From the IMG/VR virus record IMGVR_UViG_3300023184_000026, positions 1 to 64,000 of that record: 64,000 nt of DNA. One strand, given 5' to 3'. How positions within the stretch are numbered: position 1 is the first letter of the stretch; each line of letters starts with the position of its first letter. Positions 42,950 to 48,475 of this stretch are shown here, one piece after another. The notes beneath the pieces are model-generated. The model was not told where the DNA came from, did not search any database, and saw nothing but the letters and a program-made list of their open reading frames with translations. The position numbers and the translations under genes were made by a program.

Positions 42950-43306
42950 ATGGCAACAAAAAATAGATATATTACATCAAATTTTACACCCGCTGAACCA
43001 GAAGAATTTCAGAAATGGTGCAAAGAAAAGAAGATTGAAATTCATAAAACTGGATATGGAGATAATGTATATTTGACTACAAATAAATGCAATCTTAGAT
43101 ATGATGAGCAACTTGTTCGTTTTACAAAACATGACAATGTAGCACTTCGCACTGTTATGCTTTGTGAAATACGATTCAAAGGAAATGAACTAATGGGATC
43201 AACATTCTGTAAAGTAGATGACAGTGGTATAAAAGAAGTTGGTGGATTATCATATCTACACAATATGCAAAGATTCTTCAACGCCATATTGGAACAAACA
43301 AAGTAA
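42950..43306 (+). CDS. Hypothetical protein
   Basis: 118-aa ORF abutting the exonuclease ATG. Confidence 0.55.
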   Translation: MATKNRYITSNFTPAEPEEFQKWCKEKKIEIHKTGYGDNVYLTTNKCNLRYDEQLVRFTKHDNVALRTVMLCEIRFKGNELMGSTFCKVDDSGIKEVGGLSYLHNMQRFFNAILEQTK

Positions 43307-44371
43307 ATGCAAGATCCAACAAAAAAGAAATTCGCATCAATATTCTCTCAGATAAAATCTGAACATGCTTCATTGCCTGTAAACACAAAGAAAGAAAAAA
43401 ATAGTGATATTCTTGTGGTTGATGGAACCAACAATTTTATTCGTTGTTGGACCGTAGTGCCAACTTTGAGTGATAATGGTGAGCATGTTGGTGGCGTGTC
43501 TGGGTTTTTGAGTAGTTTGGGTTATGCTATCAAACTGTTGCGTCCAACCAGAGTCATTGTTGTATTTGACGGCAAAGGTGGCAGTGAACGTCGCAGAAAG
43601 TTATATCCACAATATAAAGATGGTAGAAAGGTTATGAAACGACTCAATCGTGCATATGAAGATATGAGCGATGGAAATACTGAACAAAAATCGGTTGTAG
43701 AGCAAATGGGCAAACTTGTATCTTTTCTACAAGAACTGCCAGTGAGTATTGTATCAATTGATTATATTGAAGCAGATGACACAATTGGATATATTGCCAC
43801 ACAGATGTATAAAGATAGTAGAATCACTATCATGAGTGCTGATAAAGATTTTCTACAACTGGTAAATGATCGTGTACAAATTTGGAGTCCAATCAAGAAA
43901 AAGATTTATGGAGTACAGGATGTAATCAATGAGTATGGTATTCATCCCAGCAACTTTATTTATTATCGTATACTAGAAGGAGATTCTTCTGATAATATTG
44001 ATGGTGTAAGCGGCATTGGACTAAAAACTGCGATCAAAAGATTTCCTATGCTCGTTGAATCAACCGAGACTTCGGTAGAAAATATTCTACTTCGAGCCAA
44101 AGATTGTATCAATGAGTCTAAAGTATATGCTACGGTTATTGAAAATTCAGAAATTGTACAACGTAACTATACGCTGATGCAACTGAAAGAACCGAGTTTT
44201 GCACCATCTTTGCAAATGAAGATTGACGAATCGGTACAACGCATATATGATTTCAACAAGTTTCGGTTTATTCAGAAACTAACCACATATGGTATGCATA
44301 CAAGTATACCAAATTTTCATGTGTGGTTGCAAGAAGTGTTCTATCCTTTATCGGTGTTGGCCACTTCTTAA
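43307..44371 (+). CDS. 5'-3' exonuclease / RNase H (Pol I N-terminal, FEN-like)
   Basis: LVVDGTN.FIR, VVFDGKGGS..R..LYPQYK..R, EADD.I, SADKDFLQL, GDSSDNIDGV.GIG.KT. Confidence 0.9.
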   Translation: MQDPTKKKFASIFSQIKSEHASLPVNTKKEKNSDILVVDGTNNFIRCWTVVPTLSDNGEHVGGVSGFLSSLGYAIKLLRPTRVIVVFDGKGGSERRRKLYPQYKDGRKVMKRLNRAYEDMSDGNTEQKSVVEQMGKLVSFLQELPVSIVSIDYIEADDTIGYIATQMYKDSRITIMSADKDFLQLVNDRVQIWSPIKKKIYGVQDVINEYGIHPSNFIYYRILEGDSSDNIDGVSGIGLKTAIKRFPMLVESTETSVENILLRAKDCINESKVYATVIENSEIVQRNYTLMQLKEPSFAPSLQMKIDESVQRIYDFNKFRFIQKLTTYGMHTSIPNFHVWLQEVFYPLSVLATS

Positions 44372-44391
44372 TTTTACATTCTAATTAACAA

Positions 44392-44420
44392 TTGACTAAA
44401 TAACAAATACGAAATATCGT
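44392..44420 (+). promoter_or_regulatory. Sigma70-type promoter of the helicase locus
   Basis: TTGACT-N17-TATCGT, 17 nt before the ATG. Confidence 0.55.
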
Positions 44421-44437
44421 ATTAACAAATAACTATT

Positions 44438-45271
44438 ATGGCACCAGTAATCATCGACAATCTACATAAATTTGGCTTGGAATTCCAAGTAAAAATTGTA
44501 GCAAGTATTTTAACTGACAAAGTATTTCTTGAAAGAATATGCGACATTATTGATGTGGATGCTTTTGAAAACGAAGCCCATCAATGGATTCTCAAAGAAA
44601 TTATTCAATATCATATTCAATACAAAGACTTGCCAACACCGCAAGTATTCAAGGTTCGTATTGACACTATTGAAAACGATGCATTCAAATCATCTGTGGT
44701 ACAGCAACTAACACAAGTTTACACAAAAATCAGTGAAAAAGATTTGCAGTTTGTGCGCGAACAATTTCTTGAATTCTGTAAGAATCAAAAGTTGAAGAGT
44801 GCCATTATTGAATCAGTTGATCATCTAAAAACTGGTGAATATGATAAAATAAAGGGGCTGGTTGACAAGGCAATGAAGGCTGGCATGGAACGCAATCTTG
44901 GACACAACTACCATAAAGAAGTTGCTGGTCGTATGAGTGAAATGTGCCGCAAGACTATATCAACGGGTTGGGAAGTCATTGACAGCCTCATGGATGGTGG
45001 TCTTGGACCTGGTGAACTTGGTATTATTGTGGCTCCAGCGGGCATTGGAAAGTGCGTCGGCCCAAACACAAAAATTGATATTCAATATTATGAAACGGGT
45101 ATTCCAATAAAAGGAAATTCTGGCAAAGAATATATACTATGGTTTAAACCATTTGATAAATTTGAGTTTGATGGCAGAATGCTATTTGGTTGGCAAGTTG
45201 ACAATATTTTGTTTGAATTGGAGCAACTAAAGTTGCAGGTGCTGGATTCGGAAAAACAACATAAAAAATGA
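44438..45271 (+). CDS. dnaB: DnaB/gp41-like helicase N-extein (205 aa) + split-intein N-fragment (72 aa, from Cys at 45053)
   Basis: GLGPGELGIIVAPAGIGK followed by CVGPNTKIDIQY (intein block A), then non-helicase sequence and a stop. Confidence 0.9.
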   Translation: MAPVIIDNLHKFGLEFQVKIVASILTDKVFLERICDIIDVDAFENEAHQWILKEIIQYHIQYKDLPTPQVFKVRIDTIENDAFKSSVVQQLTQVYTKISEKDLQFVREQFLEFCKNQKLKSAIIESVDHLKTGEYDKIKGLVDKAMKAGMERNLGHNYHKEVAGRMSEMCRKTISTGWEVIDSLMDGGLGPGELGIIVAPAGIGKCVGPNTKIDIQYYETGIPIKGNSGKEYILWFKPFDKFEFDGRMLFGWQVDNILFELEQLKLQVLDSEKQHKK

Positions 45272-45304
45272 AGTTTTTGTGTTAATTGTTGATATTTATT
45301 TGGT

Positions 45305-46237
45305 ATGAACATATTAACATGCAAAATTTGCGGATTCTCCGCATCGTCATTAGTTTCTCATATACGTCATAAACATGCTACTAATGGAACCGATTACAAA
45401 ATAAAATTTGGAAACGTCCCATTGTCAGTAATGTCTGATCAACAGAAAAAAAAATTGTCAGACATAAATATAAAAAAATGTAAAGATCCCGCCCATATCA
45501 AACGTATGTCGGATGTACAAAAAATGGGCGGATCAATTTACACCAAATTATATTGGACGACACGAGGATTTTCGGATATAGAAGCCAAGAAAAAAATAAA
45601 AGAAATACAAACTTCAAATTCAAAAAAATCAGTTGCCAAAGGAAATTGGGGGAAGCGATCTTGGATGTTGGTGGAGTATTGGATTTCTAAAGGTTATACC
45701 GAAGATATGGCAAAGACGGAAATTTCTAAAAGACAAGCCAAATTGTCTGCAAAATCTTCAAAATTTTTGGGACATACGCGAACAGCTGAGTCGTGTGAGA
45801 AGATATCGTCGTCCATGCGTAAAAAAATTGATGAAATTGGAACGGGGCAATGGGCTTCTCACTTTGGAAAATTTTCCGGTAGAAGTAAAGCGGAAATAAA
45901 ATTTTATAATTATATTAAAGAAAATATAGAACCCACGGCAACGGCAAATGAACCAATCGGTGCATATATTGTCGATGTCATAGTTAATAAAAAAATAATT
46001 GAATTTTATGGGGATTTTTGGCACGCAAATCCAACTATTTATAAATCAAACGAAATATTAGCCGGTTATATGGAAACACCTCGTTCGGTCCAAGAGATTT
46101 GGAATAAGGATGCGAAAAGAGTGGACACACTTCGAACGATGGGGTATGATGTGCTAGAAGTGTGGGAATCGGATTGGAACGAGCAAAAAAATCAATCAAT
46201 CAACAAAATAAAACAATTTTTATATGGTAATTCGTAA
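45305..46237 (+). mobile_element. Free-standing Vsr-like/DUF559-type homing endonuclease gene
   Basis: C2H2 finger CKIC...HIRHKH; two YW..(R/K)G(F/Y) repeats; SKAE..FY; VDVIV...IEFYGDFWH; GYDVLEVWESDW. Sits between the split helicase halves. Confidence 0.8.
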
Positions 46238-47414
46238 ACGACTAACAACAGAAGAAATTTCTATGAAAGACCTATTTCATAAAATTGGCGTTGAAGATAA
46301 AGAATTGGCAGCATTGACTGTGCCTTTTCCACTATCCGTACATACGCCGTATGGATACAAACACATTGTGACTGCGTTTAGAACGGAGAAACAAAAAACA
46401 GTCACCACGTATTTTAAAAATAATACAACATTGAAAACATCCGATCATCACCAATTAAAAGTTAATGGCGATTGGAAAAAAGTAAAAGATATTATTGAGT
46501 CGGATGTAGTTGAGACAGAATCTGGCACAACCTCCATAAAGAAAAAGCATTATGGAAATGATGAAATATTATATGACATATCAGTTGAGGACGTACATTG
46601 CTATTACAGCAACGGAATTTTATCTCACAACTCGTGGTTACTATGTTCATTGGGTGCCAGAGCAATGAAATCGGGAAAGAATATTGCTCACTTCACACTG
46701 GAACTAAATGAAAATTATGTTGGTCTTCGTTATGATTGTTGTTTTACAGGAATTGAGTTTCAAGAAATTAAACATCGTCAATCCGACGTTGAAGAAAAAA
46801 TCAAAGACATCAAAGGAAAACTTTTTGTAAAGTATTTTCCATTGAAGACAGTAAGTGCTCAATCATTAAAGTTTCATATTGAACGCATACAAGCATTGGA
46901 AGGAATTCATATTGATGAAATGGTGGTTGATTATGCCGACATTTTGCGTCCTCTTGAAAAAGAAACCAACAGCAATAGCTATAGCGAGGCTGGTGGTATA
47001 TATGAAGAACTGCGTCAGGCTGCTGGTGAACTACAGATTCCAGTATGGACTGCTTCACAAACCAATCGCGGCGGTGGTCAAGAAGATGTTGTTCAAGCCC
47101 ATAACATCGCCGATTCATATCGTAAGATCATGACTGCCGACTTTGTGTTGAGTGTTGCCCGTAATACAACAGACAAAGCCAACAACACTGCTCGTTGTCA
47201 TGTTATCAAAAATAGATTTGGACCGGATGGTATTACCTTGTATGCCAATATGAACACCAGCACTGGTCAAATTGATTTGTATGACGCCAAATCCAAAGAA
47301 TCTATGGCAATCCAATCCACTATGGAAGGTGATGATAATAGTGTAAAGAACATGTTGAAAAATAAATGGAACAGTGGTCGCCAAAAGCAAAATGGCGAAA
47401 ACACCAATTTGTAA
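46224..47414 (+). CDS. dnaB: Split-intein C-fragment (136 aa) + helicase C-extein (260 aa)
   Basis: Block B TSDHH; block F LYDISVEDVHCYYSNGI; terminal SHN then Ser+1 at 46632; helicase motifs TLEL, VDYAD, WTASQTNR, KNRFG. Confidence 0.9.
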   Translation: MVIRKRLTTEEISMKDLFHKIGVEDKELAALTVPFPLSVHTPYGYKHIVTAFRTEKQKTVTTYFKNNTTLKTSDHHQLKVNGDWKKVKDIIESDVVETESGTTSIKKKHYGNDEILYDISVEDVHCYYSNGILSHNSWLLCSLGARAMKSGKNIAHFTLELNENYVGLRYDCCFTGIEFQEIKHRQSDVEEKIKDIKGKLFVKYFPLKTVSAQSLKFHIERIQALEGIHIDEMVVDYADILRPLEKETNSNSYSEAGGIYEELRQAAGELQIPVWTASQTNRGGGQEDVVQAHNIADSYRKIMTADFVLSVARNTTDKANNTARCHVIKNRFGPDGITLYANMNTSTGQIDLYDAKSKESMAIQSTMEGDDNSVKNMLKNKWNSGRQKQNGENTNL

Positions 47415-47500
47415 GAAAATATTCTAAAATTTTTTTACAAATTTATTTTTTATAAAATGTATTTATTCACCACACAACACCCAAACAAAAATTAACTTTT

Positions 47501-48475
47501 ATGACTATTTTCGACGAACAAATTGCACGCAAACCGAATCGCTATCCTTGGGCACAAGAATATATAGACGCAATGTGGGCAGGACATTGGACTCCAAATG
47601 AGTTCACATTTACATCTGACTTGCAACAATACAAGACTGAGATGACTCTACAAGAACAACTCATTATCAAGAACACATTGAGTGCTATTGGTCAAATTGA
47701 AATTTCTGTAAAGAAGTTTTGGACAAAGTTGGGTGACACACTTCCACATCCAGCATTATCTGATTTGGGTATTACTATGGGAAACATTGAAGTTATTCAC
47801 AACAATGCATATGAAAAACTATTGGATGTGCTACAATTGCAAGATATATTTGAAGAAAATCTAAAGTTGGATATTATTCAAGGACGAATCAAGTATTTAC
47901 GCAAGTATCTTGATAAGAACTATGAAAATGATAAAAAACAATTTGTATACTCTCTTATTCTATTCACATTGTATGTAGAGAACGTGTCATTATTTAGTCA
48001 GTTTTATATCATCAATTGGTTTAATCGCTACAAGGGTCTACTCAAAGACACTGCACAACAAGTTGCATATACAGCCAAAGAAGAAACATTGCATGGTCTT
48101 GCTGGCGTTAAGATCGTAAATACAATTCGACAAGAAATGCCGGAATTATTTGACGCCGAATTGGAAGAACGCATTCTGCACGAAGCCAAAGAATCCTACG
48201 ACGCCGAATCTAAAATCATTGATTGGATGATTGGTGACTACAAAGATTCAAGAATCAGTGCAGATATTCTCAAAGGATATGTACAAAAGAGATTAAATGA
48301 TTCACTAGAAATGATTGGATTCAAAAAGATTTTTAATGTGTCTCAAGAAATTATTGATTTGACTATGTGGATGGATGAAGATGTAATGGGCAATACTATG
48401 ACTGATTTTTTTCACAAGCGTCCTGTAGAGTACTCCAAGAAAACACAGTCTATCACATTCGACGATCTATTTTAA
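47501..48475 (+). CDS. nrdB: Ribonucleotide reductase class I beta subunit
   Basis: W..HWTPNEF; iron ligands in QIE, E..H, ENVSLFSQF, EE.LH; FF.KRPVEY. Confidence 0.9.
   Translation: MTIFDEQIARKPNRYPWAQEYIDAMWAGHWTPNEFTFTSDLQQYKTEMTLQEQLIIKNTLSAIGQIEISVKKFWTKLGDTLPHPALSDLGITMGNIEVIHNNAYEKLLDVLQLQDIFEENLKLDIIQGRIKYLRKYLDKNYENDKKQFVYSLILFTLYVENVSLFSQFYIINWFNRYKGLLKDTAQQVAYTAKEETLHGLAGVKIVNTIRQEMPELFDAELEERILHEAKESYDAESKIIDWMIGDYKDSRISADILKGYVQKRLNDSLEMIGFKKIFNVSQEIIDLTMWMDEDVMGNTMTDFFHKRPVEYSKKTQSITFDDLF

Follow-up and report, generated by a model that had tools for sequence, protein, structure and literature searches.

An atypically split intein and an intervening Vsr-like endonuclease gene fracture the DnaB-like helicase gene of a lake jumbo phage

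Organization of the fractured helicase locus

The DnaB-like replicative helicase gene at 44438-47414 of the window is a fractured gene: the host gene is carried by two adjacent open reading frames (ORFs) on the same strand, each bearing one half of an intein, with a free-standing Vsr-like endonuclease gene between them. The window is the whole stretch of 64,000 nucleotides (nt) that was analyzed (positions 1-64,000 of the IMG/VR record IMGVR_UViG_3300023184_000026). The segment 45053-46631 is a selfish cassette of 1,579 bp with the order N-terminal intein fragment (IntN), homing endonuclease gene and C-terminal intein fragment (IntC), and it lies between the codons of the Walker A Lys and Ser. 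Very probably, this cassette in the helicase P-loop is sustained by trans-splicing of an insert-bearing intein split at the S1 position, which rebuilds the helicase, and by the endonuclease, which drives homing. A preliminary description, made by a model from the letters of the window, had reported a helicase broken by an atypically split intein with a Vsr-like endonuclease between the halves; its observation of the locus was correct in every detail and chance was excluded, as the ORFs, the break in the helicase profile and the intein-free alleles given below showed.

The virus record, described as a lake jumbo phage, consisted of 297,258 bp with a CheckV-estimated completeness of 100%, and the metagenome runs with this stretch were of lake or freshwater. 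Blastn of the locus against cultured phages gave no match; the closest cultured helicases, from an uncultured jumbo phage, a Microcystis phage and Flavobacterium phages, were 39-43% identical.

The locus contained three ORFs, all on the plus strand and in different frames, each with its own start and stop. The first ORF (44438..45271, 277 amino acids [aa]) consisted of the N-extein (44438..45052, helicase residues 1-205), which was identical to that of intein-free alleles and ended in the Walker A sequence APAGIGK, and of a 72-aa IntN reading CVGPNTKIDIQY followed by 60 aa and a stop codon. The second ORF (45305..46237, 310 aa) encoded the endonuclease. The third ORF (46224..47414, 396 aa) started with MVIRKR, and its start codon overlapped the end of the endonuclease ORF by 14 nt; it consisted of a 136-aa IntC, whose C-terminus read YYSNGILSHN/SWLLC with the terminal Asn codon at 46629-46631, and of the C-extein (46632..47414, helicase residues 206-465), which started with the +1 Ser that completed GK/S. 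The DnaB profile PHROG_19 was matched by the first ORF up to position 366 (161-366, E 9e-25) and by the third ORF from position 367 on (367-615, E 1e-39), and the C-extein also matched DnaB_C (E 6e-12).

Splice junction and intein-free alleles

The exteins of 205 and 260 aa add up to 465 aa, and joining them gave the Walker A sequence APAGIGK-S. An IMG/VR scan with the C-fragment yielded 80 loci, which were sorted by tblastn. Six of them (L008-L013) carried an uninterrupted 465-aa helicase whose protein was 100% identical to the exteins of the window joined at K/S, bearing out the earlier proposal that splicing would restore GIGKS and a 465-aa helicase; a seventh intein-free helicase (L014) differed from the joined exteins by a few residues. 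In the sibling locus L009, the 6 kb of DNA that end at 45051 matched the window with 96.8% identity and the DNA that begins at 46629 with 94.8%, and exactly 45053-46631 was missing from it. The insertion was precise and in-frame in a conserved host motif, the Walker A P-loop.

Contigs from two independent studies covered 44000-47900 with 0 differences, which shows that the fractured layout is not an accident of assembly and that the halves do not form one continuous ORF. About a dozen further runs held roughly the extein share of the sequence words, and the same three-ORF layout was present in 36 further IMG/VR loci.

In one lake metatranscriptome contig (run X16, 44230-46676), 45053 was joined to 46642 and 9 letters were replaced; the contig carries a sibling phage's intein-free allele. 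Since the intein-free form also exists as DNA, this contig is silent on removal at the RNA level. An Rfam search of the locus revealed no intron or other RNA family.

Intein residues, fold and split position

The first 12 residues of IntN (45053..45088) comprise Cys1 and the block A beta-strand, with C, G, T, I and Y invariant in 20 homologues. Cys1 (Cys206 of the first ORF) was invariant in 20 N-fragments and 12 contiguous precursors. In IntC, residues 11-136 (46254..46631) hold the beta3-alpha1 element (EISMKDLFHKI), block B, and blocks F and G ending in HN, as assigned by TIGR01443 (intein C-terminus, 25.2 bits against a cut-off of 15.6), by alignment to the contiguous intein P0026 and by the HINT fold. 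Block B was TSDHH (46437-46451, IntC residues 72-76), so its placement in the 136-aa C-fragment by the preliminary description was right; S73-x-x-H76 was invariant and the adjacent T72 was 90% conserved. H135, N136 and the +1 Ser (S137) were also invariant. Across about 100 family members Cys1, the block B His, the His-Asn pair and the +1 Ser did not vary. The N-terminal nucleophile, block B, the His-Asn and Ser, and the predicted HINT fold are those of a class 1 intein, and the fragments would be expected to splice.

A search with the intein region of a relative found contiguous precursors, among them L084/P0024, a helicase of 669 aa that includes a cis-intein of 204 aa at this very site. IntN 1-69 aligned with residues 1-69 of the P0026 intein, and IntC 3-136 aligned with its residues 73-206, which shows that the gene of the window is a clean break of a mini-intein of about 206 aa at about residue 70-72.

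The fold was modelled with AlphaFold2 (AF2) on a natural contiguous homologue, 54-71% identical to the chains of the window (predicted local distance difference test [pLDDT] 89.7, predicted template modelling score [pTM] 0.85). The order of elements in the model was Cys1 and the block A strand (12-25 in the model), a beta-rich piece with a 17-residue helix, a lower-confidence linker that corresponds to the split site of the window, a strand with helix alpha1 (...IKI..LF...), and the rest of the HINT fold. It gave 61 PDB intein matches at E <= 1e-3, the best being VidaL (E 1.5e-7, template modelling [TM] score 0.82 by VidaL's length, identity 14%). The family profile matched gp41-1 and VidaL (E ~1e-9) and Cat-TerL CatC (E 1.3e-6), and contiguous TerL inteins of Campylobacter phages matched IntC with 36% identity. 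IntN alone had no sequence match in the PDB and no match in the Atlas.

IntC contains blocks B, F and G, so that the split is N-terminal of block B. The preliminary description had placed it right after block A; it does precede block B, but the break lies inside block A/N1, with the beta2 strand in IntN and the beta3-alpha1 element (residues ~11-21) in IntC. The split is assigned to the S1 position in the beta2/beta3 hairpin loop of block A, directly after the insert, because insert-less relatives and the AF2 model put alpha1 after the split; for example, the insert-less intein P0096 joins ...EIEYEQ directly to RLKQEKIKISDLF. By the same relatives and model, an initial reading as an S2 split, with the IntN helix as the canonical alpha1, was ruled out. 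Described natural atypical splits have an IntN of 15-37 aa, with S1 after beta2 and S2 after alpha1 (PMC13014065). IntN was longer here, 72 aa in the window and 45-74 aa in the split loci sampled, because a family-specific insert precedes the break. The fragments also differed from those of a canonical gp41-1-type split (IntN ~88-105 aa with blocks A and B, IntC ~33-54 aa), since IntC had 136 aa.

Insert of the N-terminal intein fragment

Residues 13-62 of IntN (45089..45238) form the family-specific insert, with a beta-rich part (13-45) and a long helix (46-62, GWQVDNILFELEQLK). It is followed by the IntN tail, a variable linker of residues 63-72 with the stop codon (45239..45271), which is equivalent to the linker modelled with lower confidence at 68-76 of the contiguous intein. 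Four contiguous same-site inteins (P0096 with 146 aa, P0103, P0111 and P0112) lacked the segment that separates the first strand from the IKI..LF element, and apart from 49 absent residues P0096 was 80% identical to its sister P0052. This comparison shows that the extension is a genuine insertion in the block A beta2/beta3 hairpin, with the break at its C-terminal edge. The insert had 45-55 aa and was present also inside contiguous relatives, so that it did not arise as an appendage of split inteins. When 1.84 billion representatives were searched exhaustively with IntN, only 17 clusters matched, nearly all of them at this site.

The insert was strongly conserved. In its beta-rich part, comparison of close pairs gave 0/240 nonsynonymous and 12/57 synonymous changes, and the helix was also constrained. 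For IntN 1-12 the ratio of nonsynonymous (pN) to synonymous (pS) divergence was 0.1, while the IntN tail and the first ten residues of IntC drifted near-neutrally (pN ~ pS). The insert occurred in every split locus with upstream sequence (about 46 split loci, none without it), a count not corrected for phylogeny.

In the predicted IntN-IntC complex, the invariant Trp, Pro and Trp of the insert (20 homologues) lie in the interface, as do residues 1-15 of IntC. The complex scored 0.89 and the best of 3 controls 0.02; the mark used was reached by 58/80 solved complexes and 2/110 mismatched pairs, counts that apply only roughly here, since the IntN-IntC prediction was made with custom alignments. 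IntN was net acidic in 32/32 non-redundant pairs, and the IntC head (residues 1-10, MVIRKRLTTE, 46224..46253) was net basic in 24/32 and acidic in none.

From conservation and the complex model, a role of the insert in fragment association is plausible. That the insert acts as a capture module, which helps the very short IntN strand to find and hold IntC, is a possibility to which we give somewhat less than an even chance. The preliminary description had considered both the extension and the basic MVIRKR head as an extra association module. For the extension, constraint, retention in split loci and the predicted interface agree with that idea, but the insert is not specific to split inteins: contiguous relatives have it too, with four exceptions. 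For the head, the positive charge is conserved opposite an acidic IntN, but its sequence drifts near neutrality.

The insert might instead be structural baggage or serve another purpose, such as slowing or regulating splicing or stabilizing the precursor, and have been kept because the endonuclease gene landed beside it. This is a tentative alternative that we consider rather doubtful. It would fit the presence of the insert inside contiguous inteins and its absence from four of them, including P0096, the lack of phylogenetic correction in the retention count, and the fact that VidaL and PolB16 work with an IntN of 15-16 aa and no such module. The lack of nonsynonymous change in the insert, its invariant Trp/Pro/Trp in the predicted interface, and the retention of the insert in all of the split loci argue against it.

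A motif in the insert helix region, F-G-W-Q-x-D-N-x-x-F-E (45188-45238), resembled Listeria-Bacteroides repeat (Flg_new) proteins (P0205, E ~5e-4, 4 stretches); this likeness was judged to be probable chance.

Mobility of the cassette and the endonuclease

The cassette was transferred horizontally as a whole. Between the window and the locus L006, nucleotide identity was 65-77% in the exteins and 85-97% in the cassette, and the step fell exactly at the Cys1 codon and at the terminal Asn codon. Synonymous divergence among the window, L005 and L006 was 0.2-0.45 in the cassette and 0.75 in the exteins. The identity step and the lower synonymous divergence showed that the three parts of the cassette moved jointly, and in recent times, between diverged phages. 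The exteins were under purifying selection (pN 0.13-0.14, pS 0.75).

The endonuclease (45305..46237) consisted, by profile and fold matches, of a Ros/MucR-type zinc finger (residues ~4-57), a helical NUMOD-like linker and an EDxHD/Vsr-like nuclease (~195-310). Its family scores as a single sequence were weak. A profile of 28 members matched in the PDB the Ros zinc finger 2jsp (E 1.4e-4, residues 4-57) and the Vsr structures 1vsr, 1cw0 and 1odg (E ~1.5e-4, residues 226-289), and the members themselves matched PF18741 (25/28), ROS_MUCR (13/28) and NUMOD3 (7/28). The AF2 model (pLDDT 86.3) had a beta-beta-alpha finger, a helical middle and an alpha-beta-beta-beta-alpha-beta core. Foldseek of the nuclease gave the catalytic domain of I-Bth0305I (3r3p) as the best match (E 6e-4, TM 0.73-0.75), followed by 1cw0 and 1vsr (TM ~0.6). 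Among 28 homologues D224, E233, D237 and H240 were invariant and D269 was present in at least 90%; H240 and D269 aligned with the FWH and ERD motifs of Vsr. The pN/pS of 0.17 and the invariant catalytic residues suggest an active enzyme. The presence/absence polymorphism, the identity step and the silent hotspot described below are indirect signs that it may cut the intein-free allele next to the insertion site.

An inverted repeat, AACATAAAAA / TTTTTGTGTT, lies at 45258..45283 in the 5' leader of the endonuclease gene, with the IntN stop codon in its loop, and was conserved across divergent loci. In the alignment, 82.6% of cells were paired (42-54% when the repeat was slid), with weak folding z-scores and no covariation of the repeat beyond that of shuffles. 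The repeat was kept even in one divergent locus without the endonuclease gene.

Two other endonuclease genes were observed. The genome of the window carried a second, distant Vsr-like endonuclease gene (335 aa; G000:C1 ~135.9-136.9 kb, minus strand, L147:1450-2457), with NUMOD3-like repeats and a nuclease core, between a dUTPase-like ORF and an IMPDH/GMP-reductase-like ORF. In a group of intein-free loci (L033:3347-4285, also L034, L035, L037 and L041), a free-standing 312-aa Vsr-like/NUMOD3 endonuclease ORF was located immediately upstream of the 5'-3' exonuclease gene, which in turn lies ahead of the helicase; that position was vacant in the window (42950-43307).

Silent diversity at the homing site

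Seven distinct DNA alleles encoding the same or nearly the same helicase, a small sample, were compared. Nucleotide diversity (pi) in 30-nt windows had its maximum precisely at the junction (0.287; mean 0.058, z 6.2), the hotspot including 45047..45052 on the 5' side of the homing site and the codons for S-W-L-L-C-S-L-G (46632..46655) on the 3' side. Among intein-free alleles alone the junction peak was 0.223, which was reached by 0/2000 codon shuffles. Six-fold codons differed by 1.3 nt per codon at the junction and by 0.22 elsewhere (p 4e-5), and switches between AGY and TCN occurred in only 2/27 serine codons, the +1 Ser and residue 211.

I-Bth0305I has its highest specificity over about 14 bp across the cut site, and it tolerates single but not triple substitutions (PMC3239194). 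This intolerance of triple substitutions makes multi-site recoding as an escape from cleavage a reasonable reading. By this analogy the hotspot may reflect target sites recoded to evade the endonuclease; it may equally consist of traces that the cassette left as it was gained and lost repeatedly. A simple co-conversion tract with the intein was unsupported, as the intein-free alleles differed among themselves in the same patch. At the population level, a silent-diversity peak of this kind could serve as a signature for finding endonuclease targets in metagenomes.

Distribution of the intein family

An IMG/VR sample seeded only with IntC comprised 55 loci, 47 of them split and 7 contiguous. The endonuclease family was found between the halves in 36 of about 46 split loci, and every endonuclease-sized gap held this same family. 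The halves of ten split loci were separated by only -4 to 241 nt, and two of these (L106 and L120) retained 3' remnants of the endonuclease ORF. The short gaps and remnants showed that those lineages lost the endonuclease once the split had arisen, and stayed split afterwards. The family as a whole consisted of about 70 split clusters, 16 contiguous ones and four insert-less ones; the forms seen were contiguous, split with endonuclease, split with a remnant, and split without endonuclease.

In a tree of 98 intein cores the contiguous forms were scattered among the split ones, and the well-supported branches require at least 7 changes of state; with 126 columns and a midpoint root, the tree does not resolve the directions of change. 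A pattern scan of 185,579 cellular genomes found no relative of the intein family, and no other inteins were detected in the genome of the window.

The protein P0017, from an ENA contig, reads through the atypical split. Its ORF stops ~30 residues before the intein end, near the canonical split site, and a 287-aa DnaB_C ORF follows 24 nt downstream; the break may be a frameshift or, alternatively, a canonical-site split. Some relatives (L058:6394-8708, L073:6409-7844, P0035, P0045 and P0070) carried a second, canonically split gp41-1-like intein in the same helicase at SQxNR/C, and its IntC matched PDB 6qaz (E 2.8e-6). In L058 this second intein had its own 350-aa endonuclease ORF, so that the helicase is encoded in three pieces. 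The helicase of the window was uninterrupted at that site (ASQTNR/GGG).

Proposed mechanism, alternative explanations and implications

In the proposed mechanism, three proteins would be made: the 277-aa N-fragment, the 310-aa endonuclease and the 396-aa C-fragment. The acidic IntN and the basic-headed IntC would associate, with the ~50-aa insert packing on IntC, and the CVGPNTKIDIQY strand would pair with beta3-alpha1 at the start of IntC to complete the HINT fold. Class 1 protein trans-splicing through Cys1, the block B His, the terminal His-Asn and the +1 Ser would then join ...GIGK to SWLL..., and the product would be the 465-aa helicase of the intein-free sibling phages. The endonuclease would cut the intein-free helicase alleles of co-infecting relatives, and repair would copy in the whole cassette.

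Several results weigh against this mechanism or parts of it. The Ser73 of block B stands where Thr is usual and is uncommon, and the Pfam intein scores of the window itself were below the gathering cut-offs. No promoter or ribosome-binding signals for the individual ORFs were found beyond chance, and a sigma-70 promoter scan performed no better than shuffles. The four contiguous relatives without the insert show that it is not needed for the HINT fold, and the observation that a split implies a kept insert is a count uncorrected for phylogeny. In addition, complexes of split inteins have already been solved, so that the high score of the IntN-IntC prediction may reflect likeness to them ("memory").

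The helicase pieces could also form a non-covalent enzyme of two subunits, with the intein halves merely docking and never splicing. There are phage enzymes whose fragments are held together by interaction domains of mobile-element origin (PMC3045599), but we regard this as improbable here: the splicing residues are invariant over about 100 members, the contiguous members need splicing to function at all, and the break lies between the Lys and Ser of Walker A, where a 208-residue bulge would block ATP binding. Decay of the helicase into a pseudogene, with the phage using another helicase, is less probable still. The interruption of the gene and the large genome (297 kb) would allow it, but the exteins are under the purifying selection given above, the three ORFs are intact in dozens of divergent loci, and intein-free siblings encode exactly the same extein protein. 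The least credible explanation, which we practically discount, is an artefact of assembly or sequencing that hides a contiguous intein with an in-frame endonuclease domain. The sequence is metagenome-assembled, and the relative P0017 has an odd ORF break that is possibly a frameshift; the layout was nevertheless repeated with 0 differences in the contigs of two studies, and L004-L007, L056 and 30+ other loci share it although their sequences have diverged.

Trans-splicing of a mobile, fractured helicase therefore stands as the preferred explanation of the locus. More speculative, and in our opinion unlikely rather than likely, is an extended form of it, in which the insert evolved as a capture module that gives an S1 split with an IntN strand of ~12 residues its affinity in vivo, and the silent hotspot reflects a continuing arms race of the endonuclease with recoded, cleavage-resistant helicase alleles in lake phage populations. 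If this were true, atypical split inteins could be tuned by moving the capture module into them or by shortening it.

Atypically split inteins are rare and are wanted as tools for protein ligation, and this family is a populous natural set of them. The 72-aa IntN cancels the practical advantage of a short IntN for such a tool unless the insert is dispensable. The forms with and without the insert are a built-in natural experiment on the effect of an extra module on fragment association at S1. All stages of the homing cycle were found at one site (empty, cis-intein, split with endonuclease, split with remnants, and split without endonuclease), which is direct comparative support for invasion by a free-standing endonuclease creating split inteins, and for the split outliving the endonuclease.

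Comparison with known systems

Dassa et al. (2009) described fractured genes in which gp41-type split inteins occur together with Vsr-like endonucleases (PMC2677866; gp41-1 to gp41-9). The locus of the window resembled them in that a phage replicative helicase is encoded in two same-strand ORFs with an intein half on each and a free-standing Vsr-like endonuclease between, and in that some alleles are without the endonuclease (as in gp41-7); the inverted repeat in the leader of the endonuclease gene is a candidate for the hairpin or control element of such genes. A canonical split (IntN 88-105 aa, IntC 33-54 aa) and insertion at other sites characterize the gp41 inteins described so far (PMC2677866). 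In contrast, IntC here holds blocks B, F and G and half of block A, the site is the P-loop, and the endonuclease has an N-terminal Ros-type zinc finger. Among the described fractured genes, only a terminase locus was split after motif N1 (PMC2677866).

The ATP-binding P-loop of DnaB-family helicases (insertion point b, as in mycobacterial DnaBi1) is a known intein hotspot (Novikova et al., 2016, PMC4760082) and is the target here as well; the DnaBi1-type P-loop inteins, however, are contiguous and cellular. The endonuclease resembled I-Bth0305I, the EDxHD prototype (PDB 3r3p, PMC3239194), in the conserved E, D, H and D residues and in its multidomain architecture. I-Bth0305I is intron-encoded in recA, and the identity was only 17-18%; at its N-terminus, the endonuclease of the window has a Ros/MucR-type zinc finger with NUMOD-like helices for DNA binding.

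The likeness to atypically split inteins noted in the preliminary description held for the split position of VidaL but not for that of AceL-TerL and GOS-TerL, which is after alpha1. With AceL-TerL, GOS-TerL and Cat-TerL the intein shared a phage-borne gene, a short N- and long C-fragment and block B in IntC. These inteins are split at S2 with an IntN of 25-37 aa, whereas alpha1 (MKDLFHK) is here in IntC, the helix in IntN is that of the insert, and the host gene is different. As in VidaL (PDB 6vgv, IntN 16 aa) and PolB16 OarG (IntN 15 aa), the break falls after the first block A strand and before beta3-alpha1, and with VidaL the intein also shares the +1 Ser. Unlike these, its IntN has 72 aa through the insert instead of 15-16 aa, and the single-sequence match to VidaL was weak (E 0.065, identity 14%); identity with gp41-1 was about 23%, and the intein was not nearly identical to any characterized split intein. 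VidaL presumably comes from a "T4-like helicase"; if this origin is true, VidaL may be an insert-less counterpart at a similar site, and the novelty of the present intein would be somewhat lower. Compared with these systems, the new features of the locus are the S1 split with a long, insert-bearing IntN, the Ros-type finger on the endonuclease, and the presence of all evolutionary stages at one site.

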